This document shows, in pieces, positions 7,238 to 64,000 of a stretch of 64,000 nucleotides of DNA. This DNA comes from Rhodosorus marinus CCMP1338. Its lineage: Eukaryota > Plantae > Rhodophyta. The stretch covers positions 62,001 to 126,000 of the forward strand of contig JAMWBK010000005.1 in NCBI GenBank assembly GCA_029953675.1, written 5' to 3'. The translations under genes were made by a program, and so were the position numbers. The notes under the pieces were generated by a model. It was not told the origin of the DNA, did not search any database, and saw nothing but the letters and a program-made list of their open reading frames with translations. Each line of letters begins with the position of its first letter. Within the stretch, counting starts at the first letter, position 1.

Positions 7238-7397
7238 GGGGAGTAAAAGAGGTGCTCCGCAACAGAAAGCAGTGCGAAATCTGAGCAAAGCGCGGTAAAC
7301 GGGCGTGGCAAGCCACTAACCAAACATAAACCCCTCCAGAAAAATATTTGTAACAAAAGCATCTAAAATTTAGATGCATCAAGTTGTTACACTTGAT
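7238..7397 (-). ncRNA. U2: U2 snRNA retrocopy, 5'-truncated (starts at stem IIa)
   Basis: atcaagTGTAACAActtgat (stem IIa), gcatctaaattttagatgc (IIb), TTGTTACA (IIc partner), Sm-like AATATTTTTCTGG, then stems III and IV. Confidence 0.88.
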
Positions 7398-7454
7398 CGT
7401 CGTCAGGGTCAACATCATTTATTCCAGCCGTGCGGATGTCAACCGATGATGTTG

Positions 7455-7620: not shown

Positions 7621-8389
7621 GACGTGCCGCTTTGATCAATCATATTGACTGGGGACTTTCATGTTCTCCTTGCCTCGGTCTGTGGGTGCAGACAGAGTAC
7701 AGGTCCATCACCAAGTGTTCCAAGAGCAACGTCACGATAAGAGCTTTACCTACTCCGTTCAAGCCCTTTGGGTTCGGTTGATAGCTTGTTCTGTTCTTGT
7801 CGCTCTCGTATGTAGCACTGTACCATCATCCACTAGGCGTTCCGCAGCTGTGGACCACGCGGTCTAAGACATCGCCGCCATACGCTAGTCAGAAACTGAG
7901 ATGCACGTTGAGCTTTTGCGAGTTGAGGGTTCGTTTCTGTCGCTGGCATACGGGAGGTGCGAAGTAGTCGGCCTAAGGGGTTGCGCTGCAGACGATGAAG
8001 TGTTCCCACACCATGGCGACCCTTCCGTACATAATAGCGGTCATCTGCGAAGAAGAGACCAGGTCGTCTGTAACCAAGTACAAGACTAGGGAGTACAAGG
8101 CGAGTAAAGTCCAGACTAGGGAGAGCGGATATGAACAGGCATGACAGGTCCGCCATTTACGTGAAAGGCCTTGCATTGGCTCCTCAGGGCTCACTGGTGC
8201 GCCACTAGCATTGGAGGGTCAAGTTCCGAGGCTAATCGACCACGGTCTAACACGACAGGCGTCTTGGCGTGTTGTCCTCCTTCGCGGCTTGGACTTGGGC
8301 GGAGGCAGTGCTGGCCGTTGTCTCGGTGAGGGGTTCCGTTCTCTCCCGCTCCAGTGTGTGGGGTTGGGCATTTATCATCGTCGAGGGCG

Positions 8390-14589: not shown

Positions 14590-15215
14590 AATGACTTCAC
14601 TGTACTTGCAACCACCGAATGTAGCGCTAGAGAGGCTAGAGGAAAAGAGAAAGGGCTAGGCTAGGGAGACTCCACCTCATCGCAGCCGCGATGAAAAGCT
14701 TTGGACATGTAGACAAGTCGGGTTTGGAGTGGTTGCGGAAATGTTTTGCTGAGCATCCTGCTGAATACTTGGCGCTCTGACGGCGTTTAAGTGTCTCCCT
14801 GTGGCAATATTCCAGCCACGTGCTTTCCGAGGCACGCCATCGGCGCCTGGGGTTGCATGCTTCCCAACCTAGTTCTTAGTTCCTCTTCACGCCTTGCGTA
14901 GCGCGTCAGGCTATGTTAGTAAAGGATATGCTAGTAAAGTCCAGTAAAGGATCACAAAGCGGACGCGCAAACGCTCGTGCGGGTGGACCTTAATCGCGAG
15001 CTATGGCGTGGTACGGCTCGCCTGGCGATCCATGCCATGCGCAAAGATAATCATGTTCGGACGATGTTCCCTGTAGAAACTAGTCTTCTACCCCGCTCCG
15101 GGGTCTCCTTAGCCTAGCCCCTCCTGGTTTTCTCTAGTCCCTCTAGCGCTACATTCGGTAGTTGAAGTAAATGAAGAAGTAAAGGATCAAGTAAAGGATC
15201 AACATGTAAAGGATC
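14590..15215. mobile_element. Cluster of short 3' fragments: D (-, 14590-14672), C (+, about 14690-14948), D (+, about 14950-15215)
   Basis: Matches to the D end (cctagcccctcc...ctacattcggtagttgaag) and the C end (ggctatgctagtaaagtccag); gtaaaggatc tail repeats. Confidence 0.85.
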
Positions 15216-23610: not shown

Positions 23611-24109
23611 AGTTGTGGTAGTTCGGCTGGCGGGGATTCGGTGGATCCGCTCGCTATCAAGCCGAGCCCCCCCGAGGCCTCGGGTGTTCGGCGTCGCGTT
23701 GCCGGCTCTTTGGCGGCTGCTTATGCGTCCCTCTCCTCTCTGCGTCTCCCTCCGCCCAAGCGTCCTCTTTTGAGGCCAGGGGCGGGGGACAATTCTTCTC
23801 CTTCCCACCCTGATTCTCATCCCAATGACGCTTCCTCCGAAGTGAGGGAGCAGGATATCCGAGTCCCTGCGGGATCCTTGCGAGCTCCCTGCTTTTTTCA
23901 CTCTTCCGGGTAGTTTTTGAGGACTGGCGTTCTAGCGCGTTTCCCTTCCCCAGGCTAACCTAAGGCATCGAGACGGTGACCCGGCGACGAAGGCAGAGTG
24001 GCTAACCACAGGTGCCAGAGATGGCCTCACATGCCGCGGTGGCGAGCGGCGGTGGCAGGCGGTGTGAAGTGAGAGTTGAGCAAGATTGCGTGAGCGGCAC
24101 TGTGTCACT

Positions 24110-24420
24110 CGAAACTCGAATTTTCCAGGTGGTCAAAGCCTTTCACAATGAACGGCTGAAACCCGTGAGAAACGAGCCGCAATGCAGGGAAGGCTGGACA
24201 GGTTCTCAGCGTACCGTCACTCCTTCACTCGGCGGAGCTGCCCCTGCCCCTTTCGGCGGAGGGCGGCAGAGCTCAGATGGGCGATTACCACAGGGCATGT
24301 GACAGCATGGTCCCATAGGCATATGCTGAGCACCCTGTTTCTGCTTCGGAGACCAGAATCCACGACGCAGCGGGAGGTCGCTGGTTGTTTTTTTTTTTAT
24401 TAGTGGCTCGAGTCTTCCGC
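24110..24420 (-). mobile_element. Diverged family C-like RLE fragment
   Basis: aaagcctttcacaatgaacggctgaaacccgtgaga resembles the C segment aaagctttccacaatgaatggctggaaccggtgaga. Confidence 0.65.
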
Positions 24421-30185: not shown

Positions 30186-32319
30186 GGACTTTACTGGACT
30201 TTACTGGACTTTACTGGACTTTACTGGACTTTACTAGCATAGCCTGAAGCGCTACGCAAGGCGTGAAGATGAACTAATAACTAGGGAGGGAAGCATGCAA
30301 CCCCAGGCGCCGATGGCGCGCCTCGGAAAGCATGTCGCTGGAATATCGCCAAAGGGAGACACTTAAACTGGACTTTACTAGCATAGCCTGAAGCGCTACG
30401 CAAGGCGTGAAGATGAACTAATAACTAGGGAGGGAAGCATGCAACCCCAGGCGCCGATGGCGCGCCTCGGAAAGCATGTCGCTGGAATATCGCCAAAGGG
30501 AGACACTTAAACGCCTCAAGAGCGCCAAATATTCAGTAGGATGCTCAGCAAAACATTTCCGCAACCACTCTAAACCCGACTTATCGACGTGACCAAAGCT
30601 TTCCACAATGAATGGCTGGAACCGGTGAGAGCGACCCTCAGCGCAAGGCAGACTGGCCATGCTCTCAGCATACCGTCGTTCCTTAACTCGTCGAAGGGCT
30701 GAAGCCGCGGCCCCCCGGCGGCGGGCGGCTGCGGTGAGGTGGGCGCTGGCCACGGGGCAGGTAATCGCAAGGTCCACATATGTTGAGCGTCTGGCAGCAG
30801 CGTCGGAGACGAGGAGATCGGCTATACAACGGGGCGGTGCAGAGTCCGAGATGGATCTGGGCAGTTCCGACTCAACCTCAACCGTATGCCCTATCCGAGT
30901 CAAAGATTCGCTGAGGATGTACTTGAGGCGAGTGTGACGCCTCGTACGGAGACCTCGCAACAGTCCGCAGGAACCCAGGAAGTGGTAGCCACAAGCGTCA
31001 ATCCGGCTCTCACATCCCTGACAGAAAGACGGCCGATTAGAGTGCCACGGAGCCTGTGGCAAACCGAGATAGATCCGTGCGGCAGAACGGAACTGGAAAG
31101 CATCGAGACGATGACTCAATGACGACGGTAGAGTGGTTAACCACAAGTGCGAGAGGTTGCCTCCCAGGCCGCGGAGACGAGCGGCAGTGGTAGGCGGCGT
31201 GAGAGGAGAATTGAGCATGACTGTGTGAGCGGCACTGTGTTGGCATGAAGATAACTGGACTTTACTAGCATAGCCTGAAGCGCTACGCAACTAGCATAGC
31301 CTGAAGCGCTACGCAAGGCGTGAAGATGAACTAATAACTAGGGAGGGAAGCATGCAACCCCAGGCGCCGATGGCGCGCCTCGGAAAGCATGTCGCTGGAA
31401 TATCGCCAAAGGGAGACATTTAAACGCCTCAAGAGCGCCAAATATTCAGTAGGATGCTCAGCAAAACATTTCCGCAACCACTCTAAACCCGACTTATCCA
31501 CGTGACCAAAGCTTTCCACAATGAATGGCTAGAACCGGTGAGAGCGACCCTCAGCGCAAGGCAGACTGGCCATGCTCTCAGCATACCGTCGTTCCTTAAC
31601 TCTTCGAAGGGCTGAAGCCGCGGCCCCCCGGCGGCGGACTCTACTAGCATAGCCTGAAGCGCTACGCAAGGCGTGAAGATGAACTAATAACTAGGGAGGG
31701 AAGCATGCAACCCCAGGCGCCGATGGCGCGCCTCGGAAAGCATGTCGCTGGAATATCGCCAAAGGGAGACACTTAAACGCCTCAAGAGCGCCAAATATTC
31801 AGTAGGATGCTCAGCAAAACATTTCCGCAACCACTCTAAACCCGACTTATCCACGTGACCAAAGCTTTCCACAATGAATGGCTGGAACCGGTGAGAGCGA
31901 CCCTCAGCGCAAGGCAGACTGGCCATGCTCTCAGCATACCGTCGTTCCTTAACTCTTCGAAGGGCTGAAGCCGCGGCCCCCCGGCGGCGGGCGGCTGCGG
32001 TGAGGTGGGCGCTGGCCACGGGGCAGGTAATCGCAAGGTCCACATATGTTGAGCGTCTGGCAGCAGCGTCGGAGACGAGGAGATCGGCTATACAACGGGG
32101 CGGTGCAGAGTCCGAGATGGATCTGGGCAGTTCCGACTCAACCTCAACCGTATGCCCTATCCGAGTCAAAGATTCGCTGAGGATGTACTTGAGGCGAGTG
32201 TGACGCCTCGTACGGAGACCTCGCAACAGTCCGCAGGAACCCAGGAAGTGGTAGCCACAAGCGTCAATCCGGCTCTCACATCCCTGACAGAAAGACGGCC
32301 GATTAGAGTGCCACGGAGC
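30186..32319 (-). mobile_element. Head-to-tail chain of family C 3' fragments (about six units), ending in (agtaaagtcc)n
   Basis: Repeated RLE C-terminus ...RRLGLHASLPSY; CQGC..H...C knuckle, ADLLV, YVDLAI. Tail repeats at 30186-30237. Confidence 0.92.
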
Positions 32320-32324
32320 TTCAA

Positions 32325-33985
32325 CTAGCTGTTCACAAAGGTGGTCAGTCGAATGCAGCAGCGGTCTGTGGCGCCATCAGGTCCTGGCAAGTTCGTTGCC
32401 GTGCCGGATTGGAGTAGTTCGTCTAGGTAGGTAGAACCTGTCCAGTTCTGTGCAAGCGATTGTCGCCAGCTGCTGTAGAAAGCGAGAGGTTGGATCCTGG
32501 TGCGCATGGCGAGGCCTGCTCCACCCCATCGGCAGGGAAGCTGGATCTGCGCCTGAACCGCGGCTTTTTCCGCTTCAGAGAGCCCTCGGCTTTCGACTAG
32601 CGAGCCGCGGAGTTTGTCGAGTTCGATGAGAGAGGTATAGTCTGCTTCGCCAGCGAGAATCGCTCCGTAGGGTAGTGCCAATGTGCGCAGGAAGTAGTCA
32701 AGCCGCGGTCCTGCACAGTAACGGAAGAGGCTCAGTTTAGTTTGGAGTTCAGAGGTCGGTAGTCGTAGAATTGCGTGCACAAGTCTTTCGTGTTCTCGTT
32801 GTAGCCGTCGCAGGTGTCCGTTCACGTAGTTCCTCGTGCCAAGGGGAATCGAGTGGAGATGAATGCCATCGCGTGTGAAGTTAACGTCGGGGATGTCGTG
32901 GTTAACCAGTCGGGGCGTGTGGAGATTACGACCAAGGAGTTCAGATTTTGTCCTCTGCAGGTCTGCGCCGATTTCGGGGAGGTGTAGTTCACTCCATTGG
33001 AGCGCTGCGTTGACCTCGGGTAGTGGCCCAACCAGAGTGATGTCATCGTGTATCGCAGTAAGCGTACGCGTTGGATATCGCTTATGCAGAGCGTGGAGAA
33101 ACGGGGAAAGCGCCAGTGCGTGCAGGGCAGGTCCGAGCGGGTCGCCTTACTGTACACCGGTGCAAGCTTGGAGGGTGAGCCAATCGGCGGCGGAGTGGTC
33201 GCACCAGCCGAATTGGTGAGGCGCGCTTTCCCCGTGGAGTCCGTAGCTGAGCGTCATTAGCGGTCGCAGTTCCGGGAAAGCCTGTTCGATGATCCTGTTC
33301 GCGATCCTGCGGTCGATTCGGTTGAAAGCGTTCTTCAGGTCTACTTTCAGGAGGACGTCGTCCGGGCGAGCTCCTTAGTGTGCTTCCACAATGTGTAGGG
33401 CATGTTCGCACCCTCCTGTCGATCCGGTTGAACGCGTTCTCCAAGTCGAGTTTCAGCAGCGCGTGTTGCGGTTCGTAGTATAAGTGGGCTTGAACGGCGT
33501 GTAGGGCTTGTTCACATCCGCTACGAACGGATATTCCCAGTTGCTCTGGAGCGAGAAACGTGCTCAGTCTACTTGAAACACCGCAAAGCACCCACTGGGC
33601 TGCCAACTTTCGTAAAACTTCTGGAACCGCGATCGGGCGAACTCGATTTCGTCGAGGGACTTCGATTTCGGAGGCGTTTTTCTTGTCGGGTTATGAAGGG
33701 CAGCAGTCGGCTGCTACTCAGGGCTTGCCGCAACGTACGTGGAAATATTTCAGGGTTCTTCACGAGACAGCGCATAAACCGTACCAGCAGCTGCCTGTTC
33801 GTTGGAGTCACTGCCTGTAGATGCTCGGCGCGAAGGCCACTTGGTCCAGGACCCGTTTTTGGCGGGTGTCTATTGATCAGTGTGAGGAGTGATTCGTCAC
33901 TCGCGTCAGACGGGTTCCATTTGCGAGGGGGGTGCTCCCTAGCTTCGTCGCCAATTCGGTTCATTTCTTTCGCAACGTCCGGATG
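32325..33985 (-). pseudogene. CRE-like RT fragment of a further lineage (E), frameshifted
   Basis: GPGPSGLRAEHL, QLGISVRSGCE, LDLENAFN, RLDYFLR and LPCRWGG. Its sequence differs from A, B and D. Confidence 0.85.
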
Positions 33986-34688: not shown

Positions 34689-37600
34689 CTCAGATGCTGG
34701 GGTTTCGTCCACGGGTCCTCCAGACACGCAGGTAGACAGTACAACGGACGTTCGCCAAGGTGCAGCTCCACAGACAACTCGTCACCGGACCCCTTCTTCG
34801 CCACCGTCCACCTCTGAGGCCATGGCCCTTGACTCCGCGAGTGCACCTGAACCTGGTCGGCAGATACCAGAGGATGAGAGCGAGAGCCCGCAAAGCAAGA
34901 AACCCCGTGTTACGATTGCTGAACAAGAGGACCTTTCTCACCAAGCATGACTGGGCGTCGTCCAAGTTCCAGTTCCCGCACGCGTAAGAGAGTTCGCCAC
35001 CCGCAGCTGTTCTACATGGACGTGGACCGCTGGGTTACTCGGCTTGACCTGTTCCTGCAAGCCCGCACCAATAATTGCACCCTTTGGTGGGCTTTGACTC
35101 ACTCCCCTACGAATACGCGAGAACACGTCCCTTCGGGACAAGTCCCAGCATGGAGCGCGCTTTTCAAATATGCCCTGGAAATGGCCCTGGATGACAGCGC
35201 CCCGGACCTCCGCCGCCTTTTTGTCCAGGTACTGCCTAGTCTGATCCTGGGATATGCTCGTGATCTTACCATGCCTGCCCAAGTCGAGATGCTGCTTGAG
35301 GACGACTTCGAACCCTTGTGGTGTGCAATTTCTGCTACTCGTCAGCGCACAACTGCTGCTTCTTCTGCAACTCGTACTCCGCGCTCGCCGTTTTCCTCCC
35401 GTCGTGTCCTCCATAAGACGAAAAATCGCCGCCTCTCTCAAGCAGCACAGCACATCCTTTCGACCCCGCTTGCCCCAAGAACTCAACAAACCTGGGAGGT
35501 CCTCGAAGCGATGTTCCCGGACCTTCCCGACGCGGTCCTACATCCCCAACTGGAGGAGTGTTTGTCGGCCAGTCTCCATGCTTCTGCACCTCGGCCGAGT
35601 CCCTTATGGGAACGCTGGCTTCGGATGAATCGCTACTTGCACTTTTACAACGACTCCCCGCTGGTATAAGCCCTGGCCCGAGTGGCCTTCGGGTAGAGCA
35701 CCTGCAGGCTCTCGAACACCATGTCCGCCCAGCCCTAGTCCGGTTCCTTCGAATGATTAGCACGGACCCCGAGACTCTGCCAGAGATCCTACTCCACAGC
35801 CTCCGGAGTAGTCGTATCGTGCCTAGGGCTAAGAACCCCACCTCGGAGTCGGGGACTTCTTCACCCCGCCTACGCCCCATTGGCATTCCCGAGGTGCTGC
35901 GCAAGGTTGCTTCACAATGGGTCTTACAACACGTCGTGCCCCGCGCTCGTGATTTCCGGCTGCCTACTCAACTCGGTGTTGGCGTCTCCGGGGGCTGTGA
36001 AGCAGTCCTCCACACGCTCCAGGCTCATCTACACTATGAACCTGACCACATTCTACTGAAACTCGACCTGGAGAACGCGTTTAACCGCATCGATCGCCGT
36101 CTTGCGAAACGCATTATCGAAGCGCGCTTTCCGGAGTTGCTCCCTTTCTATGTGCTTGGGTATGGTCGTGATTCCGCGGATGGTTCGTACCACTTCGGCT
36201 GGTTTCCTGACGACGGCTCCCCTTCTTCCGCTCGAGACCGCTTCTTCCTCCGATCGCGTACTGGCGTTCAACAAGGGGATCGTCTCGCACCGGTGCTGCA
36301 TGCCCTGGCCCTTTCGCCTTTTCTTATGGCGATGCGCACTCTCTTTCCCCGCATCACGGTGCTCGCGCTCCATGACGACATTAGCTTGGCGGGCCCCTAC
36401 TACGATATTCACGAGGCATTTCAGTGGAGTCAACGAGTTTTAAGCTCGCTCGGCGCGAGACTGCAACCGGATAAATGCGTCCTCTTCGGCCATCGGATTG
36501 AATCGCCAAGGCTTGTCAACCACGACTTCCCCGAAGTTGACTTTACTCGGCACGGCGTCATGCTGCACTCTGTTCCAGTAGGCACCCGGGCCTTTGTCAT
36601 CGGAGCCTGCCGAAAGCTGCAAAACACACACGCCAAGCTCGTCAAAGGGATTCAGAAACTCCCCGAAGGCGAGTTGCAGACGAAGTTGGCGCTCTTCCGC
36701 TACTGTGCTAGTCCGCGGCTAGACTATCATCTCCGCTGCCTGGCTCTTCCTTTTGGCGCGCTTCTTGCTACTGAGGCGGACACCCTCACAATGCACGAGT
36801 TGGATACGTTGTGCGGAAGTCTGCTTCTTCTCCAAGGGCTTCCACAGGAGGAGTTGGAGACCGTGCAAGCCCAAATTCGCTTACCTGGCAAGTGGGGTGG
36901 CCTTGGCCTGGCTACGCGCGTTCGTATTCACCCGATTGCTTTTTGTTCCGCTTGGACTCGCACGCGTCAGACTAACGCCGCTGACAATACCTTTCTGAGA
37001 CGTCTGGGTACGGCGTGCCGCGGGACCGATCCCAATGCCGAACCTATTCTCGAGGATCTCTCCAGCTCAACGGATCTTCTGGACCAGCAGCTCTCGCTCG
37101 CTAGCCGCTGGACCACTTCTCGCCTCAGCTCCCGCACTTCTGCTCGTATTCGCGCCCTCGCTCTTTGGTCCAAGGCGCTTCCAACAGATGATCCCGCTCC
37201 AGCTTCCATCAATCCTCCGCTCGCAGGTCCTCTACAACAAATACTCTCTCAGGAGAGTCACCGTAGAGCGTTTGAGGATATCGTGAATGATTCCGCGCTT
37301 GACGATTGCACTCGTGCTCTTGTCCGCTCTGCTTCTGGTGCTGGCGCTGGTGGCTGGCTTCATGTGGACCTCCCTAGCACAGGGTCTGAACCCCTTTCCA
37401 CCGAAGAAATCCGATGCAGTTTACGCTTGCTTTTGGGACTCCCGGTACCTGGTCTCCGCACTACCCCGGAATGCACAGTCTGTGGCAAACCACACGCTGC
37501 GGATGGGACCCAACGTCTTTTTCACGGTTCCACTTCGGCTGGGAATTGGACTCTGCGCCATAATCGGATTCGTGACGAGCTCGTGAGTCACCTTCGGCGG

Positions 37601-38155
37601 TGGCACCTTCCGGATGTTCAGGTTGAGCCTTATGGGTTTTTTGAGGGTAGTCGTCTCAGCCCTGACATAGTCGTCCGTCATCACCGCACGGGTAAGCACT
37701 ACGTTATCGATGTCAAGGTGGAATCCCCATTGCGGGCCCATCTCCTCGCTCGCGTCGCATGTCAATCGGGTTATGCCGCCGCCAATGCTGAAGCCGGGAA
37801 ACGAGCCAAGTATCGGGATGCCATCGGTGACCACAATGATTTCCACTTTGTACCCTTCGCCATCCAAGGCTTTGGACGACTTGGCCAAGCGGCCCAAGAC
37901 TACATTACAGAAATTACTGATCATCTTGAGCACAAAGCGGACGCGCAAACGCTCGTGTGGGTGGACCTTAATCGCGAGCTATGGCGTGGTACGGCTCGCC
38001 TGGCGATCCATGCCATGCGCAAAGATAATCATGTTCGGACGATGTCCCCTATAGAAACTAGTCTTCTACCCCGCTCCGGGGTCTCCTTAGCCTAGCCCCT
38101 CCTGTTTTTCTCTCGTCCCTCTAGCGCTACATTCGGTAGTTGAAGTAAATGAAAG
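34689..38155 (+). mobile_element. Family D CRE-like element, 5'-truncated in ORF1
   Basis: ORF1 end, ATGA overlap at 34947, RT-RLE ORF, and a 3' UTR ending gttgaagtaaatgaa. Confidence 0.9.
35558..38095 (+). CDS. Family D RT-RLE (N-terminus frameshifted, original start 34947)
   Basis: GVQQGDRLAP, LHDD, LPGKWGGLG, CTVC, RHNRIRD, SPDIVV and IDVKVESP. Confidence 0.9.
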   Translation: MFVGQSPCFCTSAESLMGTLASDESLLALLQRLPAGISPGPSGLRVEHLQALEHHVRPALVRFLRMISTDPETLPEILLHSLRSSRIVPRAKNPTSESGTSSPRLRPIGIPEVLRKVASQWVLQHVVPRARDFRLPTQLGVGVSGGCEAVLHTLQAHLHYEPDHILLKLDLENAFNRIDRRLAKRIIEARFPELLPFYVLGYGRDSADGSYHFGWFPDDGSPSSARDRFFLRSRTGVQQGDRLAPVLHALALSPFLMAMRTLFPRITVLALHDDISLAGPYYDIHEAFQWSQRVLSSLGARLQPDKCVLFGHRIESPRLVNHDFPEVDFTRHGVMLHSVPVGTRAFVIGACRKLQNTHAKLVKGIQKLPEGELQTKLALFRYCASPRLDYHLRCLALPFGALLATEADTLTMHELDTLCGSLLLLQGLPQEELETVQAQIRLPGKWGGLGLATRVRIHPIAFCSAWTRTRQTNAADNTFLRRLGTACRGTDPNAEPILEDLSSSTDLLDQQLSLASRWTTSRLSSRTSARIRALALWSKALPTDDPAPASINPPLAGPLQQILSQESHRRAFEDIVNDSALDDCTRALVRSASGAGAGGWLHVDLPSTGSEPLSTEEIRCSLRLLLGLPVPGLRTTPECTVCGKPHAADGTQRLFHGSTSAGNWTLRHNRIRDELVSHLRRWHLPDVQVEPYGFFEGSRLSPDIVVRHHRTGKHYVIDVKVESPLRAHLLARVACQSGYAAANAEAGKRAKYRDAIGDHNDFHFVPFAIQGFGRLGQAAQDYITEITDHLEHKADAQTLVWVDLNRELWRGTARLAIHAMRKDNHVRTMSPIETSLLPRSGVSLA

Positions 38156-39440: not shown

Positions 39441-39871
39441 AACCCACACGATCACCCAGCGATGCATATCGTCCCAATTCTAACGAAGGAACTCAAAAAT
39501 ACCCTTCTCCACGCTCCACCTCCTACAATAGTCCTCCTCTCTCATACACCGTCCTCAGTCCCCAGTCCTTCCGACTCGGAGCACATATGTAGACAACAAA
39601 ATCTCCCCCCCACGCTCTCTTCGAATAGCACACCACTTTCTCTCTCTCAAATCTCTAGTGGATAGCCACCACCCCCTCTCTTACTCAAAGCCGGGGGCGG
39701 CTCTCCCTAGATATTGTTTCTTACCCAAGTTATAAACTCTGAAAACGAATCACATTTGCTCAGGGATCAACCACCTTTCTCTTCACAAACCCCCCTGCAA
39801 AGTGTAACACGCACCAACCTCGCCCCAAGTGTATGCGCTCAACCAACCGTAACCTTTACTGGGCAGCTGCT

Positions 39872-41333: not shown

Positions 41334-41703
41334 CAGTAGTGTCTCCCTTTGGCGATATTCCAGCGACATGCTTTCCGAGGCGCGCCACCGGCGCCTGGGG
41401 TTGCATGCTTCCCTCCCTAGTTATTAGTTCATCTTCACGCCTTGCGTAGCGCTTCAGGCTATGCTAGCATCAGGCTATGCTAGTAAAGTCCAGTAAAGTC
41501 CAGTAAAGTCCAGTAAAGTCCAGTATAGCTCCAAGGAGACGGAAGAAAAGCAAATTCTGCTAGTGCCGGAAACGCCACATCGAACGAACGAATGGTTTAA
41601 ATCGGAGGCTGAAAAAAAAAACCCCGAGGGGAAAAAAAGACTAAGCGCGGCGAAGTACTCGCGCCTCCAACATCAAAGCGGCATTCATGCGCCACAGCAG
41701 GAA
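41334..41703. mobile_element. Family C 3' fragment (+, 41334-41523) and family A 3' fragment (-, 41581-41703)
   Basis: Terminal sequences and tails match the families; the C tail has four agtaaagtcc units. Confidence 0.88.
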
Positions 41704-42598
41704 CATCAGGGTAGGCAACACAACGTCTATTGACGGCAATGTCAAGGCTTGCAACCGCGGCCCCGATTGGTAGTTTAGTTATGCGTATCTGTTCGCATTA
41801 CGCCCGGCGTAGCACTTAAGGCTATGCTAGTTGCTGTTGTTGTTGTTGTTGTTGTTTTTGTTGTGAGGCTATGCTAGTACCCAGAGCATCTGGAAGCCCG
41901 CGTACACGTTCGCGATGTCCGACCTAGAGCGCAGATTATGAGTTGAGAAGTCTCCAACTGCTACAGTGCTTTCCTCTCTCTTCTCATGTGTTGTACGGTG
42001 AGTTCTGAGTCCTAGTTTCTCCCTAAAGTAGACCGTCAGGGTGGTGATATTCAACGCAATGCAAGGGGCGTTGTCTGTACTCCCCGTGAACTTTTTTCAG
42101 TTTGGTGGGGGTGGGGGGGGGGGTGGGGTGGGTTGAAAGGTGGAGGAGTACAGTTGAGCTTTCCCCTCGGGGTTTTTTCTTTCAGCCTCCGATTAAACAA
42201 TTCATTCATGATAGGCGCTTATTGTCACTCAGCTGATGGTCAGACGCGACCAAGATGGGGGTGCAGAGAATATGGAAGTCGCGGCTCGCAGGGAAATGGT
42301 ATATAAGCGTGGATCCACGGAATATGCTAGTCTTTGTTCGCGTGATGACTGTCGTGGCCGGTTAGGGTTCTTTGATTACACCACCACACTTCGGCCTCCT
42401 GGAAATGGTAGCGAAGAGAGTGGCGACTGTGAAGATAGGGTTCGGGGTACTGAGAGCGCTCATAGTTTGACGACCGGGAATTGCCTCGCGGGCAAGTTGA
42501 GTGAGAACGATCGGGATCGGAGGAGGGAGGCGCAGGAGCGACGTGAGTGTTTTTTACGCTAAAAACAAGCGATCTGTTGAAGTGAAATTTGCTGGGCA

Positions 42599-44530
42599 TT
42601 GTCAAAGATGGTCCGCTTGTTGTTGGTTTTGGGATGGGCACTTTTATCTTTGAGAGCAGTGCTCGGACAGGAAGCCACTTGCAGCGATCAAAGTTTTTTC
42701 GCCCTTCCGGACAAGGTCAAGTTCATCTTCAACTCGAACAAATGGTATATTGGCTCTGAAGAGAGTTACTGCGTACATATGGTGCCAGCGAGCCACGTAC
42801 TTGACGATGTGATCACTGCAAGTAACAAGCTTGGATTCGTCTGCTTCTCTTCAGTGAATGGATGTATGAAGATGAGGTTCAAAGTTTACCCAGGCTTTCG
42901 GTTGAGGGAGGTTTCCGGCACAATGGGGACTAACGATAAAAAAGTGGGAAGTATCTCGCACCCGATGAAGGAACGGGCTGGTAAGCGTCATGTGAAGTCG
43001 TTATTCTTCTGTCCAGATACGATTCTATCGAGTCAGCTTTGCTGCAAAACGAAAATGTTCATGTCGCCCGAGATGCTTGTCGTTGAGGAGGAAACGGGAA
43101 AGTTCCTTATGGCGCTGCCGTGGGCCAAGAAATGCAAGCTACGACGTAAGAGCGATGTTAGTAGTCGTAATCGCCCGGTGTGCGACGGGGTGAGGATGAG
43201 CTGTCGAAAGGCTAATCGGATCTATGGCACTGAAGGATCCGATGTCATCCATGGAACGGAGGAGACGGATGTGATCTTTGCTCTTGCGGGGAGCGACGAG
43301 ATCCACGGGCTAGGTGGTAGAGACTATATATACGGAGGGAGCGGGGACGACAAGCTGTTCGGTGGCGACAATAAGGACACGCTTCGAGGAGAGAATGGAT
43401 ACGACGTCCTCTACGGCGAAAATGGGGGCGACACACTGTTGGGAGGATATCAAGATGATGAACTGTTCGGAGGCAATGGCCACGACTTCCTAAATGGAGA
43501 GGAGGATTTTGACCGCAGCTTTGGAGAAACCGGCGACGATACGATTGTTTCGTTCAATAAAAGATCTGGTGGTTTACCTCACGACGCGTATTCAAGCGAC
43601 TATATCTCTGGAGGGAATGGGGACGACAGGCTGTTTCCCGACTTCAGGTCAAGTGCTTTTGGCGGTGAAGGAGATGACTATATGGTGGGCGGCTTCCGCA
43701 AATTTGGAGGAGGTGGTAACGATACTATGCTGCACGGACATTTCAACAGTGGCGGTGATGGTGACGATTACATCAAAAGCTTCTACGATGATGTTGGATA
43801 TTCTGATCGTGGAGCAGGGATTGAAGGAGGCGATGGTAACGATGATCTCTACATTGGAGGGGCTGGCCCTCAATCTATTTCTGGTGGTGCGGGAGATGAT
43901 AGGATAAGGATGTCGTCATCTGCGGATTATTTTGGCCAGAGTATTGATGCTGGCCCTGGAGACGACAACGTTACGGCTCTCTCCAGGTTTTCGTACTATG
44001 ATCAGCTGACCGTGAATTTGGGCGAGGGAGATGACAACCTTGAGGCGATAAACTTTTTTTATCTCGACCTCAACGGCAACGATGGCAAGGATTACTTCCG
44101 TGTATCAGGCACACACTTTCTCTATGACATTGACCCCTCGAAGAAGCTAGTTGAGATACACGGAGATGGAGATGACGATATCGTCAAGGTATTCGACACC
44201 AAAGCGACCATTTTCGGAGGCGATGGCGACGACGAAATTGTTGCGTACTATGGGGGAACGGTGTTTGGCGAGGGCGGGAGCGATGATATCCAAGGGAGAT
44301 CCGACCAAGATCATGAAGTGCTAGCTGGAGAGGGAGATGACACTGTCAAGCTGGACGGTGGGAACAACACTGTAGCCGGAGAGAGCGGAAACGATGTTCT
44401 CACGAGCGGGGATGGGGACGACAACATCACCGGGGGAGAGGGGAACGATATCATCGAAAGCGGCGGAGGAAACAACATAGTGGATGGAGGACCGGGCATG
44501 AACATCATCGACGGCGTTCCCGACTACTAG
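42599..44530 (+). CDS. Secreted protein with hemolysin-type (RTX) Ca-binding Gly/Asp repeats
   Basis: Signal peptide, Cys-rich N-domain, then many GGxGxDxLx nonapeptides (GGSGDDKLF, GGNGHDFLN, GGEGNDIIE). Confidence 0.9.
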   Translation: MSKMVRLLLVLGWALLSLRAVLGQEATCSDQSFFALPDKVKFIFNSNKWYIGSEESYCVHMVPASHVLDDVITASNKLGFVCFSSVNGCMKMRFKVYPGFRLREVSGTMGTNDKKVGSISHPMKERAGKRHVKSLFFCPDTILSSQLCCKTKMFMSPEMLVVEEETGKFLMALPWAKKCKLRRKSDVSSRNRPVCDGVRMSCRKANRIYGTEGSDVIHGTEETDVIFALAGSDEIHGLGGRDYIYGGSGDDKLFGGDNKDTLRGENGYDVLYGENGGDTLLGGYQDDELFGGNGHDFLNGEEDFDRSFGETGDDTIVSFNKRSGGLPHDAYSSDYISGGNGDDRLFPDFRSSAFGGEGDDYMVGGFRKFGGGGNDTMLHGHFNSGGDGDDYIKSFYDDVGYSDRGAGIEGGDGNDDLYIGGAGPQSISGGAGDDRIRMSSSADYFGQSIDAGPGDDNVTALSRFSYYDQLTVNLGEGDDNLEAINFFYLDLNGNDGKDYFRVSGTHFLYDIDPSKKLVEIHGDGDDDIVKVFDTKATIFGGDGDDEIVAYYGGTVFGEGGSDDIQGRSDQDHEVLAGEGDDTVKLDGGNNTVAGESGNDVLTSGDGDDNITGGEGNDIIESGGGNNIVDGGPGMNIIDGVPDY

Positions 44531-44729: not shown

Positions 44730-45770
44730 GGTACAAAGGTTCCAGCACTGCCCGACTTCGACCGGACTATGGCAGAGACGACACGACGAGATCTGCTCAG
44801 AGCTGGCACGATGGCTGAACCGTTGGAATTTCCTGGACATCGAACAGGAGCCACAGTCTTACTTCGAGAATTACGGGCTGCGGCCGGATATTATCGCGAC
44901 ACACACAAGGACGTTTCAACGATATGCACTAGATTGCGGAAATGTTTTGCTGAGCATCCTACTGAATATTTGGCGCTCTTGAGGCGTTTAAGTGTCTCCC
45001 TTTGGCGATATTCCAGCGACATGCTTTCCGAGGCGCGCCATCGGCGCCTGGGGTTGCATACTTCCCTCCCTAGTTATTAGTTCATCTTCATGCCTTGCGT
45101 AGCGCTTCAGGCTATGCTAGTAAAGTCCAGATGTGACGGTGATCTCACCGCTGCAGGGCAAGTACCTCGGGAGGAGCAAAGAGGGTATGCGGCTAGGCTG
45201 GCAGAGAACAACAAAATGGCCCACTATAAGGAAGCGATGAGCGTTGAGCAACCCGATGACAAGTTCATCCCGCTGGCGCTGGAGACTTTCGGACGTACCG
45301 GAAAATTGACACAAGACTTTCGTAAGGAAAGTTGTAAACATCGTCTCCACCGAGCGGATGAATTAAGTGATGTACGAGCTGAGCTGAACCGGACTCTTTG
45401 GCAAGGCAACGCGGGGGTGGCATTAGGCACCCTGCGGGTGGACCAGTTGGAGAATCCACTGGTCCCTCTGTTTTCTTTTGAACGTAGCATGAGACCCCAG
45501 TAACGGGGTTGACGTGAGCTTTTCCCTTAGATAGTGATAGAATCCGTGTTGCGCTGCAGTAGGCAGCTGCCTAGTAAAGCTTACGGTTACGTTAGTCTTG
45601 ACGTGGTGGTTGCCCAGGCATGTTTGAAGTAGTGTTGCGCTGCATTAGGCAACTGCCCAATAAAGGATATGGTCCAGTAAGTTTTTCCCTAGATAGGATT
45701 AGACGTAGTGTTGCGCTGCAGTAGGCAGCTGCCCATTAAAGCTTACGGTTACGTTAGTCTGGGGTTAGTT
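44730..45770 (+). mobile_element. Diverged family B (B3) 3' fragment interrupted by family C (44935-45128), followed by short B ends
   Basis: Removing C and one agat copy restores ...RYALDVTV. Confidence 0.85.
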
Positions 45771-46401
45771 ATAACTTCAAAAATGATTGAGATTTTCTCG
45801 TTGAGGTTGATGAGGAGTTTTTAATCAGACATGAGTAAGGAGGAGCCCAAAACACCCTGAGACAGGGGAGGTCACTAACGGCGGAACCGCAAAGCGCGCG
45901 CCTCCAAAGTCAGCCCCGCGTTGTAGACCAAAGCACAAAACTAAGCTGCATCAATTGTTCTGGCACACCTTCCGATTCTTTCTCGAAACGATCAGAAAGC
46001 CAGTCCACACCTTCCAGCTCCACAAAACCTAGACGTTCGCTGACAAGAGTGCCAAACGGATGGGTCAGCGCTGTGGTCTGCACTGATACATTTGTAGGAA
46101 CTTCGCTGTAAATAATATGTTTACGTCAACCCGTAATGGCAAATGTCGCGAAATCGCAAATGTCGCGAAATCGCAAATGTATCGAAATCGCGCGAAATCG
46201 CGACAGTTCCATTAAATGGTTGGTTTCTCTTGTCAAAATTAGTCACTTTTAAAAATATTTTCAGATTTTCTCGTTAAGGAGAAAAGACGAGGGACTTGGT
46301 AGAAAAGCAGCATAGTATTGGGATGGGACTGTTGATTGCTGTTTGCAAACGCTGGAGGGGACTTCGGGGTTTGCGATGTTTGGGGTTGCGATTGTTACGA
46401 G

Positions 46402-57000: not shown

Positions 57001-59398
57001 TGCTCAAAGTGGGAAGTGCGGTTCCCCAGGCCCCTACTGCGGCTGCAGGTTGGACCACAACACGATTGCAGAGGCCCAGTCCCGCCAATCGCAATGGGAG
57101 GCCTACCTGGGCGCGCACAACATCACAGGTGGGTCGCGGCAGAGCGCTCAGCTCTTCATCGAGAAAATACCCCAGGTCACGGAAACTTTCAGCATCCGCA
57201 CGAGTGGCCAACCACCGGCCCCAATGAGTTGGAAGTGAGCGAAGCCAATAGGTTAACCGCTGACTGCAACAATACCGAAACAGCAACAACGAGCACTGGA
57301 GAAAGCCCGGAGGTAGCCGTCGAAGCTCTGCAACCAGCTGTCTGTGCTTACCGAGGAGCTGCAGCAACTCGCCTTCAACGAAGGACGGCGACCCGTAGGG
57401 GATGCCCAAGTGGACAAAACCATCCGGTCTCCAAATATACAACTGGGTATTGGAGTAAGTGGCGGGTGCGAACGCTCCCTTCACGCGATCCAGGCCCATT
57501 TGTCATGCGAACCCGATTCGGTGGTCCTTCGCCTAGACCTTGAGAATGCCTTTAATCGCATCGACCGACGCCTTGCCAAGCAACTGGTGGACGAACACTT
57601 GCCGGAGCTTGCACAAGTGTATAGACTTGGATATGGAAGCGACAACGCGGACTCACCGACGCTCTGTGGCTGGCGATCTTCCCCTGGACAGAACGAAACC
57701 GACACCTCTCGCCTGACTCTCCAAGCAACTACAGGAGTCCAACAGGGAGATCCACTGGGGCCGGTGCTACATGCACTATCCCTGGCGCCCTTTCTAAGAG
57801 CGTTGCGAGCCAAGTTCCCCAACGAAACGATTGTTGCTATCCACGACGATATCACGATTGTCGGGTCGCTACAAGCCGTGAAGGCGTCCCTGGCATGGGC
57901 AAAAACTGTGCTCCCCTCTCTTGAAGCACGCCTGCAACTCGGCAAGTGCACTGTGTACGGGCGAACACTGACTACCACGCGAGTGGTCAACCATGAGATT
58001 CCTGGAGTGCAAGTGACCAGAGACGGAGTCACCATCCACTCGATACCGATAGGCAGCCGAGAATATATCGAACAGGAGTGCCGGGGGTTGCAAAATAAGC
58101 ATGAGAAACTCTTTGAGGAAATCGCCAAGCTCCCACAACCGGAGCTTACGACGCAAATTGCCCTCTTCAGGTTCTGTGCAGAAACGCGACTAGACTATGT
58201 GCTACGATGCTTCGCATACGAGTTTGGAAGAAATCTGGCACGCGAGGCCGACGTGATGACCAGATATCACCTTGAAATTCTATTCGGAGGCCTCGCTACG
58301 ACAGCTGTAGAGGACGATGAGTACGCAGAGCTGATCTCGGACCAAATCGCTCTGCCCTGCCGCTGGGGAGGTTTGGGTTTCGGTACTCGAAAGCGCGTCC
58401 AACCCATCGCGTTTTACTCGTCATGGAGAAACACCTTCCGGAACAATGAAGATGAATGGCCATACCTGACTGAACTAGAGCGGGAGGTTACGGCAGAACG
58501 CTCACCAGACACATACGAGCCGATGGATCAACGATGGTCGACTGCACAGCTGGCGGACCAGATCTGTGCATCGTCGCGAGCAATACAACGTAGGCTCGGA
58601 CCAGAAACCCCTCCGCGGATCTTGGCACTGACAACCCTGCAACAACCGCGAGAAACATGTCTTCGAAGCGCCCCGGGCGAGACTGCAGCTTGGAATAATG
58701 GTTCAATACAACAAACCCTCTCTCGAGAGGAACACCATTGTGCATTCCAAATGCTGTGGCAACGTAGGCATGACGAAATCTGCAGAGAGCTGGCACGGTG
58801 GCTAAGGCGATGGAACTTCATGGACGTACAGCAAGAACCTGAGGGGTACTTCGAGAACTACGGACTGCGATCTGATATCGTTGCTAGGCATCCGAGGACC
58901 AAACAAAGGTATGCGCTGGATGTGACGGTGGTGTCACCATTACAGGGAAAATATTTGCGGAGGAGCCAAGATGATAGCGGATACGCGGCGAGAGCTGCGG
59001 AGAAGTGGAAAATCGCTCACTACAAGGAAGCGATGGTGATCGAGAAACCGGATGATAAGTTCATCCCGATAGCGATAGAGACGTTTGGGCGTACGGGGCA
59101 AATGGCACAAGAGTTCCTCCGCGACAGCTGCAAACACCTACTGCACAGGAGTGAGGAGCTGAGAGACGTGAGATCCCAGATAAACCGGCAACTATGGCGA
59201 GGTAACGCAGAGATAGCATTAGGCGCTTTGCGCGTGGACCAGCTGGAGAATCCGCTGGTGCCTGTTTTTTCTTTTGAACGTAGCATGAGACCCCGGTAGC
59301 GGGGTTCCAGTAAGTTTTTCCCTAGATAGGATTAGACGTAGTGTTGCGCTGCAGTAGGCAGCTGCCCAGTAAAGCTTACCGTTACGTTAGTCTGGGGT
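54007..59398 (+). mobile_element. Family B (subfamily B2) ORF2 and 3' end, interrupted by A (55080-57437), with an internal deletion near 58752
   Basis: ORF2 start at 54055 (TAATG). RT continues ...LVPLQ|LGIGVSGGCE across the insertion. Ends in RLE and tail. Confidence 0.9.
55080..57437 (-). mobile_element. 5'-truncated family A with tacaac TSD, itself interrupted by a family C dimer (56184-56865)
   Basis: tacaac at 55074-55079 and 57438-57443; cggggagact at 56174-56183 and 56866-56875. Confidence 0.92.
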
Positions 59399-59399
59399 A

Positions 59400-62300
59400 A
59401 CCCCAGACTAACGTAACACCGGCCCCAGTGGATCTCCCTGTTGGACTCCTATAGCTGCTTGGAGAGTCAGGCGAGAGGTGTCGGTTTCGTTGTACACGAA
59501 TCAACGCCACTTGCGCCTGTTGAGTTGCACCTTGGAGGTGTTCCGCGCGGAGACCGCTGGGTCCTGGGCTCTTGCCCTAAGGAAGACGTGCCACGATCCA
59601 CATGAGGCCCTCGTCGGCCGCTTTTCTTGAATCCCACCGCCGCTTAATTGTTTCGGTATTCAGAGCGAGCAAAGATTCCAGGGCTTGTGCAATCTCGTCT
59701 GGTAAGTCACCTTCCGCCGGATCGGGAAAGAGCGCTTGTAGTTGTCTCCACGTAGCCGCGGTAAAAGGTGCCATTTCGGTGGCCTGTAGGCTCCGAGCTA
59801 CATCTGAAAGGCGGCCAAGGTGTGCTAGTTACATCTAAAGTCCAGTTACATCTTCACGCCTTGCGTAGCGCTTCAGGCTATGCTAGTAAAGTCCAGTTTC
59901 AACGCCCGCCGCCGGGGGGCCGCGGCTTCAGCCCTTCGAAGAGTTAAGGAACGACGGTATGCTGAGAGCATGGCCAGTCTGCCTTGCGCTGAGGGTCGCT
60001 CTCACCGGTTCCACCCATTCATTGTGGAAAGCTTTGGTCACGTGGATAAGTCGGGTTTAAAGTGGTTGCGGAAATGTTTTGCTGAGCATCCTACTGAATA
60101 TTTGGCGCTCTTGAGGCGTTTAAGTGTCTCCCTTTGGCGATATTCCAGCGACATGCTTTCCGAGGCGCGCCATCGGCGCCTGGGGTTGCATACTTCCCTC
60201 CCTAGTTATTAGTTCATCTTCACGCCTTGCGTAGCGCTTCAGGCTATGCTAGTAAAGTCCAGTTTCAACGCTAGTAAAGTCCAGTTTCAACGCTCGCTTG
60301 TGGCGCCCGAGATGTTGGCGTCGAACCGCTTCAGCTCCTTGCGGTGCGGTAGTATGCGACAGCATAGACGCCTTGTCCTCTAGGGCGCTCCAGACCGTAG
60401 AGAATTCTCCTTCAAGCACATGCGATACCTGAATGCCAACATCAAGTGCAGAGTGTCCAAGGACAAGGCCAGGGAAGTCCTACAAGAAGCAGGCTGGCGT
60501 TTGCTGGTGCGGTGCTGTCCATAGAGAGCTCCAACCATTCATTCATTCATTCAATGCAGCACGGAAGAGGCAGCTCCATGTGTGAACCTGGGCGCGTGGC
60601 ACAAATCGCCGTGTGGGAACCGGGCAGTGTGTAAGGCGCGTCCACTGCCTGCCTCCTTCCGTGACGTCGTCGACGAAGACGCTCCACCGCCTGATCCAGT
60701 CTTGACGATCCGAGAAGAATAGAGGCTCTTCGCGGCGTCGTTTGATTCCCCTACGTCTGCTCGGCATTATTGCGCTGGGTTTTCCTGGCTCTCCTGCGTG
60801 TCCATCGCGTGATGGTTGCCGTCAAGGGCAACCTGTGTCACAGTGGTATCCTGTGGAGTTTCCACGGCTGCCGGAGTCATCTCAGTATCCGGTCCGGTGC
60901 CATCGGCGGATACTCGCGAGCGCTTCTGTTGAGGTGGCTCCGGAAGGTTGCAGAGGAGCTCCGCATGGGGATTGTCCTCGTGTGCTGTGTTCTTAGGTAC
61001 TTGGGAAGTCGCGCTGGTCTCAACCGGGGCGTCAACTGTCCCACGGTCTGCCTGTACATCCCCTGGAAGGGGCGAGGCTTCAGGGTCTGCGTTCGAAGCG
61101 GCTGCAGGCCCAGGGGGTTCCGCGCACTCCCCGGGTACCTCAGGCGGATGTTGTCTGGCTTTTAGGACTTTACTAGCATAGCCTGAAGCGCTACGCAAGG
61201 CGTGAAGATGCTATCTTCAAGAGCTCTAGTCGTCCCTCCAGATACTCGTAGAGCGCTGCGAGAGTGTGGAAGGAGAGTTGTCGCCTGCGGATCCTCGAAC
61301 GAATGCGGATAAGCTGCTCGATGGCCCGCTTCAGCGTTTGGGCAGCGATATCCCCGGGAGCGATGGTCTGCCGTTCGAGGTAACCGTAAGCTTTACTGGG
61401 CAGCTGCCTACTGCAGCGCAACACTACGTCTAATCCTAACCCAGAAGGTTGTCTGGGTCCAGCGCCTGGCCAGTGTAAAGGCTTACTTGTCGATCGGCGT
61501 GTCGTTGTGTGAAGGATCCGAAAATCCCAGTCCGGAAAACTCCTCGGGAGATGCACTTTGGAGAATCGGAATTGCGTCTGGATGGCACAGCAGGCAGGCA
61601 TGGGAGGCAATAAAGTCCACATGCACCACATACGAGCTGGGAATACCAAGTGCTCTGCAAAGAACCGTTTCAAAGTCCGCAGGGGCCACCTCATCCAGCC
61701 TTGGGGGTCGGACATTCCGTAGCGTCGCGAGGACTGGAGCAACATCGGGTCCCCAGCCAGACCCCCCGACCGTAGCGTGCACTTGCCGCAGGGCAGCCTG
61801 CTGGGTTTGGGGTCCGGGGCGTCCAAAAGTTCTGGAACGAGCATCTCCTCCTCTCCCTGGTTCTTTCTGAGCTGCAAACTCGGCGAAGGTTGGCCTTGTA
61901 GGGCCCTCCCCGATGGCTGGGAATGCCTCCGCATAGTGTCCTAGATCCCGGACACCTGTCCCTCCCTGGGGCGCAGGGAGCCGGGTTCCTAAATCATGGA
62001 CGTCATAACTTCCTGGCAGTCGACCGTTACGGTAACCGGTTTCGGGGGCGAGGTGGTTGCCTACGGCCTGGCGCGGGAGATCATGCGGAGATGGTGCAGA
62101 ATTCGTAGTAGCGGCTCCACCTTCCCACATACCCGGTTTCCGGGACAACTCCGTAAGGCGTCCGGTGACGCCTTGCAGCTCTTGCGAGCTGTTGACTCGC
62201 GAGTACAGTTGAAAAACTGCTTTGTAGAAGTCTGTAATTTCGGACGCAGCGATGCCCAGGTCCTGGTAGCATCTGTCGAAGCTACGCAGTTGATGCAAGA

Positions 62301-63526: not shown

Positions 63527-63730
63527 GGGGAGTAAAAGAGGTGCTCCGCAACAGAAAGCAGTGCAAGATCTGAGCAAAGCGCGGTAAACGGGCGTGGCAA
63601 GCCACTAAACAAACATAAACCCCTCCAGAAAAATATTTGTAACAAAAGCATCTAAAATTTAGATGCATCAAGTTGCTACACTTGATAGAACAGATACTAC
63701 ACTTGATCTTAGCCAAAAGGCCGAGAAGAT
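63527..63730 (-). ncRNA. U2: Full-length U2 snRNA copy (about 204 nt)
   Basis: ATCTTCTCGGCCTTTTGGCTAAGATCAAGTGTAGTATCTGTTCT is the conserved U2 5' end with the GUAGUA branch-pairing motif. Stems IIa and IIb, Sm-like site, GCTTGC stem III tip and TTGCACTG loop IV follow. Confidence 0.95.
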
Positions 63731-64000
63731 CCCCAGACTAACGTAACCGTAAACTTTACTGGGCAGCTGCCTACTGCAGCGTATCACTAGTGCTACTACT
63801 ATCTAGGGAAAAGCTTACGCTAACCCCGCTACCGGGGTCTCATGCTACATAAGAAAAAACTGGGACCAGTGGACCCTAGACTACTTTCTACGCTGCCTCG
63901 CCTACCCCTTTGGAAGAACACTTGCACGGGAAGCGGACGCCCGGACGCGTTATCACCTCGATACGCTATTTGGAGGCCTCACTACTACGGCCATCGAGGA
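63731..64000. mobile_element. Variant B 3' end (-, about 63731-63870) abutting U2, then a B1 RT fragment (+)
   Basis: ccccagactaacgtaac tail at 63731; ctagactactttctacgctgcc matches about 22800. Confidence 0.85.

Follow-up and report, generated by a model that had tools for sequence, protein, structure and literature searches.

A family of LINE-like elements in Rhodosorus marinus that probably inserts at CT/AG and regenerates this target in its own tail

The specificity of long interspersed nuclear elements (LINEs) with a restriction-like endonuclease (RLE) is normally ascribed to long recognition sites read by N-terminal DNA-binding domains. Most RLE LINEs are specific for long multicopy-gene sites or for microsatellites, while HERO is largely non-specific, and Utopia-1_NVit is occasionally inserted in tandem (PMC4640811). 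RLE-type LINEs serve as models of site-specific retrotransposition, and work is under way to adapt them for gene insertion (PMC13580325). The present analysis concerns family C, a repeat family in a 64-kb stretch of Rhodosorus marinus CCMP1338 contig JAMWBK010000005.1 (hereafter the window), which is eukaryotic and crowded with transposable elements (TEs). C copies prefer a very short target, CT/AG (the slash marks the nick), and also enter the tails of other C copies. The whole is probably best explained if C is an R2-type RLE LINE that nicks at CT/AG, cuts the second strand with a 10-bp stagger and regenerates its own target.

The longest C copy (887 bp, reverse complement of 30370-31256) was used as the reference (ref). 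A protein search with the C open reading frame (ORF) led to the R. marinus proteins NDN08_000222/223 and to MMETSP0011, and the loci from this search are one 21-kb genomic locus (L001) and four transcript contigs (L002-L005). C copies in these loci belong to older subfamilies with 74-88% identity (94% for one fragment), and their tails differ from that of the young C in the window. The C insertions, with their target-site duplications (TSDs), and the matching empty targets are as follows.

44931..45132, + strand: single C insertion in host B3; TSD AGAT at 44931-44934 and 45129-45132; C ref 693-887 at 44934/5-45128; nick site caCT/AGAT; CTAG at 44929-44932.
52409..53006, - strand: single C insertion in a long terminal repeat (LTR) retrotransposon; C ref 313-887 from 52994 to 52420; TSD AGTCAGTAAC(C) from 53004 to 52994 and from 52419 to 52409; nick site cgCT/AGT; CTAG at 53003-53006.
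56174..56877, - strand: array III, two-copy, in family A; C from 56866 to 56184; TSD AGTCTCCCCG from 56875 to 56866 and from 56183 to 56174; nick site taCT/AGT; CTAG at 56874-56877.
4767-4778 of the window, + strand, and 16500-16511 of L001: empty target CTAGTCTCCCCG of array III in other, uninserted family A copies.
59825..60292, + strand: array IV in host B2, the result of four insertions at the site tgCT/AGT; TSD AGTTTCAACG; CTAG at 59825-59828.
54510-54521, - strand: empty target in the host B2 paralog; reads gtgCTAGTTTCAGCG / CTAGTTTCAGCG.
30186..32328, - strand: array I, five head-to-tail 5'-truncated C copies; 5' junction agCTAG (32325-32328) plus 5-nt filler ttgaa, from 32328 to 32320.
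41335..41524, + strand: array II; flanks ...gcttC/AGT and AGTatagc, thus TC/AGT (41334/41335) and not CT; TSD of at least 3 bp.
61165..61229, - strand: 46-bp C fragment (ref 842-887, from 61210 to 61165); CTAG (from 61229 to 61226), then 15 nt of filler.
8083..8123, + strand: 19-bp mini-insert TACAAGGCGAGTAAAGTCC (8094-8112), ending in a C tail unit; 11-bp TSD AGACTAGGGAG; nick CA/AG, not CT.

The original prediction held that four reconstructable C insertions in unrelated hosts fall at CT/AG. The coordinates of these four (B3, the LTR element, family A and B2) proved exact on checking; in each of them CT lies directly outside the TSD and AG opens it. A fifth junction had been placed at CTAG 32325, and it is present as the 5' junction of array I, with its 5 nt of filler and no matching 3' TSD. 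Hosts were confirmed through uninterrupted paralogous copies for three of the four cited insertions (B3, family A and B2). Without C and one TSD copy, host B3 gives a gapless alignment with three B paralogs; these have CTGGAT in place of its CTAGAT. The host of the insertion at 53003 is an LTR element with RVT_1 and integrase ORFs. The 46-bp fragment is imprecise: its 3' flank lacks the initial AG, and about 8 bp of host are replaced relative to the paralog at 20440-20720 (76% identical). The 19-bp insert came from a systematic scan for tail-plus-TSD signatures. The proposed short-motif preference is borne out in that the motif pre-exists in the host, as the empty paralogous sites show, and lies exactly at the TSD boundary. 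It is not absolute; six of the eight independent non-self sites are at CT/AG, one is TC/AG and one is CA/AG.

CTAG is at chance level in the window, with 184 occurrences compared to 191 in shuffles (0.29% per position). The binomial probability is 1.6e-14 for six of eight non-self sites at CT/AG and 7e-11 for the four TSD-exact sites alone. An ascertainment effect, in which the cited junctions merely happened to lie near CTAG, would profit from the small sample and from a motif that is not rare. Such a coincidence is nevertheless vanishingly improbable, given these binomial values, an inventory that took in all C loci without selection, and the exact position of CT/AG relative to the TSD in every TSD-defined case. 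Events found after the hypothesis was fixed (a 7-bp insert, a 15-bp insert and a case in L001, all described below) also fit.

AG occupies positions +1 and +2 in every TSD-defined C event, and the usual TSD is 10 bp. Nothing is conserved among the aligned pre-insertion sites beyond R-C-T/A-G-(T or A); position -3 is a purine in all seven of seven CTAG sites, and +3 is T or A. The purine at -3 and the T or A at +3 could explain oriented insertion despite the palindromic core. Because CT lies outside the TSD, it is not supplied by the element or by primer microhomology. The preference is specific to C, as the 3' flanks of family A have neither an AG nor a CTAG pattern.

Family C was inventoried by a search of the whole window, which gave 17 fragments that all end in the same C 3' region and begin at 15 different reference positions. 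Besides these, there are two tail-only mini-inserts, one of 7 bp (59837-59843) and the 19-bp insert listed above. Identity among the window copies is 98-99%. The C 3' end reads ...GCTATGCTAGTAAAGTCC, and this 18-mer stands at 13 3' ends in the window (at most one mismatch), compared to 0.03 expected by chance. AG directly follows the 18-mer at 9 of the 13 ends; it is derived from the target and lies outside the element, because the upstream TSD copy has AG too. The tail unit of C is the 10-bp AGTAAAGTCC, with one to five units per 3' end, and the tail CTAG sits exactly 10 bp from the C 3' end.

Other readings of the tail were considered and dropped. The AGTAAA of the tail was set aside as a poly(A) signal, since no poly(A) follows any C copy. 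A Penelope-like or retrozyme element with a hammerhead or other structured RNA was also dropped; the only Rfam matches in the window are two to U2 small nuclear RNA (snRNA). A possible 7-bp hairpin formed by GCGUAGC and GCUAUGC (45097-45117 and equivalents) has the C of the tail CUAG as its last base. Pairing over 10 subfamily sequences is 91%, and one compensatory change is seen in L001b (GCGUGGC with GCCACGC). The hairpin is not claimed, as covariation is not above shuffles (189/500) and the folding z-score is -0.75. Separately, family B 3' tails contain CC(T/C)AGTAAAGCTTACGG, which is similar to the CTAGTAAAGTCC of C, and they occur as tandem partial copies (45520-45760; 61380-61440; 39790-39850). 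At about 61380-61440, a 56-bp B-tail fragment is inserted relative to the paralog at 20440-20720.

The coding part of C is partial.

30421..31290, - strand: 3' part of the C ORF, 290 codons, with a CCHC knuckle, RRH and (A)D...D; stops about 50 nt short of the tail.

Its C-terminus carries the motifs C-x2-C-x9-H-x4-C, RRH, (A/P)D and a second invariant D, which are conserved across families A, B, C and E. Identity in this part to the LINE families of the window is 40% for A and about 25% for B and E. The family A ORF (963 aa) has RVT_1 and an R2-like C-terminal stretch that matches the CCHC/RLE region of solved R2 proteins (E 2.8e-06). In older C-subfamily copies (L005 and L001, 78-88% identity), RVT_1 is collinear and lies upstream. 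Exo_endo_phos, the apurinic/apyrimidinic (AP)-type endonuclease domain, is absent by Pfam from the 963-aa family A ORF and from the L005 pieces. C shows the footprint of target-primed reverse transcription (TPRT): a precise 3' end, variable 5' truncation and a TSD of mostly 10 bp, without LTRs or terminal inverted repeats. Family C is best read as a recently active RLE-type (R2 group) LINE that is prone to 5' truncation, with the RLE assignment drawn from motif-level similarity.

C also appears repeatedly in C. In the 5' part of array IV, the TSD AGTTACATCT (59827-59836) is followed by the 7-bp insert AAAGTCC and by AGTTACATCT again (59844-59853). The second AGTTACATCT consists of a 4-bp host remnant, AGTT, and the 5' end of a 46-bp C fragment reaching 59894. 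Host bases and the 5' start of an earlier C copy both contribute to AGTTACATCT, so the original CT/AGT was re-cut, with the second nick at +10 whatever the sequence. The 3' part contains AGTTTCAACG at 59895-59904, C ref 530-887 at 59903-60260, the TSD at 60261-60270, the 12-bp C fragment CTAGTAAAGTCC at 60271-60282, and the TSD at 60283-60292. The first bases of the ref 530-887 copy overlap the TSD, so one to two nt of this junction are filler or ambiguous. AGTTTCAACG is thus present three times (59895, 60261 and 60283), separated by the 358-bp and 12-bp C fragments; because of this, the CC/AGT junction between C tail and TSD must have been re-cut twice.

An older C copy gives a second kind of evidence.

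14695..14952, + strand: older C copy (about 91% identity, ref 655-884) with an insert in its tail; tail ...gctatgTT/AGTAAAGGAT.

The insert is a 15-bp mini-insert of young C, ATGCTAGTAAAGTCC (14928-14942), flanked by the 10-bp TSD AGTAAAGGAT at 14918-14927 and 14943-14952. Two further junctions break exactly after the tail CTAG, at about 31290 (array I) and at 41467 (array II). In L001, a separate contig with older subfamilies, a copy of about 70 bp stands at the CT/AG of another copy's tail (about 20486) with a 12-14 bp TSD, AGTAAATCCATC(CA). All C-in-C junctions are head-to-tail. The earlier proposal that C targets its own tail is borne out by the TSD-flanked mini-insert in an older tail, the two post-CTAG junctions, the re-hits at CC/AGT and the L001 case. 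The tail unit, which had been described as about one TSD long, does match the usual TSD in length at 10 bp.

Two side observations were made in C-like tails. At 41819-41877, a 35-nt (TTG)n-like insert lies between 12-bp direct repeats, AGGCTATGCTAG, within an old C-like tail. The minus strand shows a (CAA)n insert, not C, located at CT/AGCATAGCCT and flanked by a 10-bp TSD, which is a C-type signature in the opposite orientation at a palindromic CTAG. An array of an older C subfamily in L001 (13200-13830, - strand) ends in tail-only units (CTAATAAAACCA / CTAGTAAAACTACC / CTAGTAAAAACC / AGTAAAACAACC); it looks like several abortive insertions of 12-14 bp from different subfamilies stacked in one tail.

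The arrays differ in make-up. Array I contains ref 204-887 (from 32319 to 31636), 533-880 (31637 to 31290), 854-887 (31290 to 31257), 1-887 (31256 to 30370) and 745-887 (30368 to 30226), with five tail units in all (30235 to 30186). Array II contains ref 750-879 (41338-41467), which ends at the tail CTAG, then a 'ca' filler, ref 866-887 (41470-41491) and three more units to 41521. Array III contains ref 380-887 (56866 to 56359), a 'gc' filler, ref 725-887 (56356 to 56194) and an extra tail unit (56193 to 56184). Single inserts have one terminal unit; the copy nearest the 3' end has two in array III, four in array II and five in array I. Insertion at the CT/AG of a tail duplicates one unit, because the tail CTAG is 10 bp from the 3' end and the TSD is also 10 bp. 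This is suggestive only of an origin of tail units as TSDs of self-insertion, as priming slippage would vary their number too.

In the proposed mechanism, a ribonucleoprotein would make the first nick on the bottom strand inside the consensus R-C-T/A-G-W, where AG is always found in TSD-defined events and CT is strongly but not absolutely preferred. C RNA would then be reverse-transcribed off the nick from its 3' end (...CUAGUAAAGUCC), and early abortion would be usual, leaving inserts of 7 to 887 bp. Cutting of the top strand 10 bp downstream would create a 10-bp TSD beginning with AG, with the stagger at times 2-4 bp. Each new copy would bring a CTAG located 10 bp from its 3' end as well as a CC/AGT junction with the TSD, and so regenerate its own target. 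Expected outcomes are head-to-tail arrays and repeated hits at a single site, and the (AGTAAAGTCC)n tails probably owe part of their expansion to this process. The sequence shows the motif, the length of the TSD, the presence of the motif in empty sites, re-insertion into C tails and at sites already used, and the RLE-like motifs. We infer that the RLE makes the nick, that protein and not RNA pairing recognizes the motif, and that the tail units derive from TSDs.

Several observations weigh against this mechanism. The eight independent non-self sites come from a single 64-kb TE-rich window, and CT is missing from two. Of the six CTAG cases, two (array I and the fragment at 61165-61229) are imprecise, having filler and lacking a matching TSD. 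The motif is permissive and not sufficient, since nine copies of TGCTAGT in the window carry no insertion. The 5' junctions of older subfamilies in L001 and L004 are without CTAG; these are uninformative, as one falls in a (GAT)n tract and another, inside a copia reverse transcriptase (RT), is unclear. The C motifs align with the CCHC/RLE region of solved R2 proteins at an E of about 0.2, which is a weak similarity. All young copies in the window lack the 5' part, the longest having 887 bp, and show no RT or N-terminal DNA-binding domains. Finally, in arrays I and III each internal junction is made up of a complete tail unit, 0-3 nt and the next 5'-truncated copy, without an intervening TSD, an arrangement that fits template jumping equally well.

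End-to-end template jumping is an established property of the R2 RT. Arrays I and III, and partly II, might be products of single TPRT events in which the RT, at the 5' end of one C RNA, jumps to the 3' end of the next, with the number of tail units set by slippage. If so, the arrays would be no evidence of self-targeting, and the CT/AG preference at the outer junction would still stand. Related RTs do switch templates in the window, as seen in a U2-family A chimera (7067-7403) and in a U2 copy between a B tail and a 5'-truncated B. Template jumping does not account for the full TSD copies that separate the fragments of array IV, the TSD-flanked tail mini-inserts (14918-14952 and L001 about 20486) or the breaks exactly after the tail CTAG (31290 and 41467), and it does not predict that multi-unit terminal tails are limited to arrays. 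We regard it as a possible account of these arrays, if not the likely one; arrays I and III could be partly template-jump products.

The two U2 loci are of interest in their own right. At 7067-7403 (- strand), the last 160 bp or so of family A are joined to a 5'-truncated U2 snRNA that begins at about nt 46, and the whole has a 9-bp TSD, ACGACGATC (7403 to 7395 and 7075 to 7067). It is analogous to U6-L1 chimeras and suggests that the RT switched template, from A RNA to U2 snRNA. At 63536-63760 (- strand), a full-length U2 snRNA (140.7 bits) starts right after a family B 3' tail (...agtaaagtttacggttacgttagtctgggg), and the sequence behind it runs into a 5'-truncated B copy. Rather than a functional U2 gene, this is probably a retrocopy formed by template switching in the order B-U2-B.

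Target choice by the C RNA is another alternative. Here, the 3' motif of the RNA (CUAGU or CCAGU) would pair with melted or nicked target DNA and either choose the site or filter priming, while the endonuclease itself would have little specificity. The used targets CTAGT, CCAGT, TCAGT, TTAGT and CTAGA are all within one mismatch of the tail CUAGU or CCAGU. AG opens the TSD in every TSD-defined event, as expected if a primer with the 3' end ...CT pairs with an AG in the RNA. The uniform head-to-tail order of C-in-C junctions is the sole orientation in which the primer is complementary to the tail, and bare AG(T) is frequent at junctions inside arrays. However, the CT is found on the top strand 5' of the nick, outside the primer. 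A complete ...GTCC precedes the target AG, which places priming at or beyond the RNA end and not at the internal CUAG. Pairing of 3-5 bp is weak for site selection, and the non-C (CAA)n insert at 41819-41877, with CT/AG and a 10-bp TSD, argues for a cut that is independent of C-tail pairing. RNA guidance is thus unlikely, and reading of the motif by protein is favored because CT is outside the primer and the inserts keep the full ...GTCC. A combined version, in which the RNA motif reads the target by pairing and positions an otherwise unspecific RLE nick, and in which the (AGTAAAGTCC)n tail is a by-product of TSDs and not of RT slippage, is more doubtful still. If it were true, C would be a naturally RNA-programmed LINE that could be retargeted by tail editing.

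Several other coding regions and searches describe the setting of C. RVT_1 was found in ORFs at 2927-5818, 35558-38095, 57344-59299 and 53256-53930, and the integrase ORF at 50963-51925 belongs to the LTR element. An ORF of 1126 codons at 46336-49716 (+ strand) encodes NB-ARC and ankyrin domains; its 3' two-thirds (47220-49700) form an internal tandem repeat in a 132-bp register, with 74-86% identity and strong positive GC skew. The 643-codon ORF at 42599-44530 (+ strand) has seven matches to RTX-type calcium-binding nonapeptide repeats (HemolysinCabind, E = 1e-29), which are unusual for a eukaryotic nuclear context. Two ORFs of more than 1200 codons each (10725-14516, + strand; 24445-28368, - strand) are without significant Pfam match. 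Directly downstream of the second, at 23962-24331 (- strand), are rearranged C-like fragments with 70-87% identity. The MMETSP transcript contig L005 (31-3792) contains an ORF for a Fea1-like (low-iron-inducible) protein, then, in tandem, a C-like element truncated at its 5' end and another C fragment. Since the Fea1-like ORF and the C-like copies share this transcript, transcription of host genes reads through into C-like copies. A search of metagenome_contigs for an exact 23-mer from the tail of young C gave no matches, and a degenerate tail pattern gave three unrelated chance matches (L006-L008). Exact look-up of 20 ORFs in the protein collection gave no matches. A homolog search with family A yielded just two proteins, both non-Rhodosorus, and no further genomic loci.

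Compared to the R2 group (R2, R4/Dong, NeSL/Utopia, CRE and HERO), C has similar C-terminal CCHC and PD..D endonuclease motifs, a precise 3' end with a variable 5' end, and sequence-selective insertion. The sites of the group are typically 28S rDNA, spliced-leader genes, U2 nt 38/39, tRNA genes and microsatellites, whereas C uses a 4-6 bp motif with a palindromic core in unrelated hosts and has a regular 10-bp TSD. L1 prefers TT/AAAA as target and has a poly(A) tail and an AP-type endonuclease. C resembles L1 in its short degenerate nick motif that matches the RNA tail, its variable but characteristic TSD, heavy 5' truncation and insertion in older tails; it differs in its RLE-type motifs and heteropolymeric tail.

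In Dong, which targets (TAA)n, Togen, which targets (TG)n, and some HERO elements, the target likewise resembles the element's own tail repeat, the primer can pair with the RNA tail, and copies gather in each other's tails (PMC4640811). In contrast, the 10-mer unit of C does not pre-exist in the genome as a microsatellite, C mostly enters other TEs at single CTAG sites, and the tail repeat may be made by TSDs. C is also not confined to arrays of its own tail repeat, with eight independent insertions in unrelated non-repeat hosts (B3, the LTR element, family A, B2 and others). Crocodilian Utopia elements with weakened U2 specificity are also RLE LINEs found at short sequences, which resemble the ancestral target; their copies rarely show TSDs (PMC4640811), whereas those of C are regular. 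A link between the CT/AGT of C and the U2 site of Utopia was rejected because the Utopia junction is elsewhere, at nt 38/39, with the downstream U2 sequence starting at nt 39 (PMC4640811). Neither U2 match in the window carries a C insertion.

No description of CTAG-preferring LINEs or of Rhodosorus retrotransposons was found in the searched literature, and as far as that literature shows, this is the first description of target choice by retrotransposons in Rhodosorus. With a 4-6-bp nick motif like a restriction site, a fixed second cut at +10 and a self-regenerating target, C would be a simple natural system. It could inform the share of endonuclease and RNA in site choice, the expansion of heteropolymeric tails and the growth of TE islands by self-nesting. 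A target that resembles the element's own tail is a classical concept, and family C refines existing knowledge of such systems and overturns none of it.

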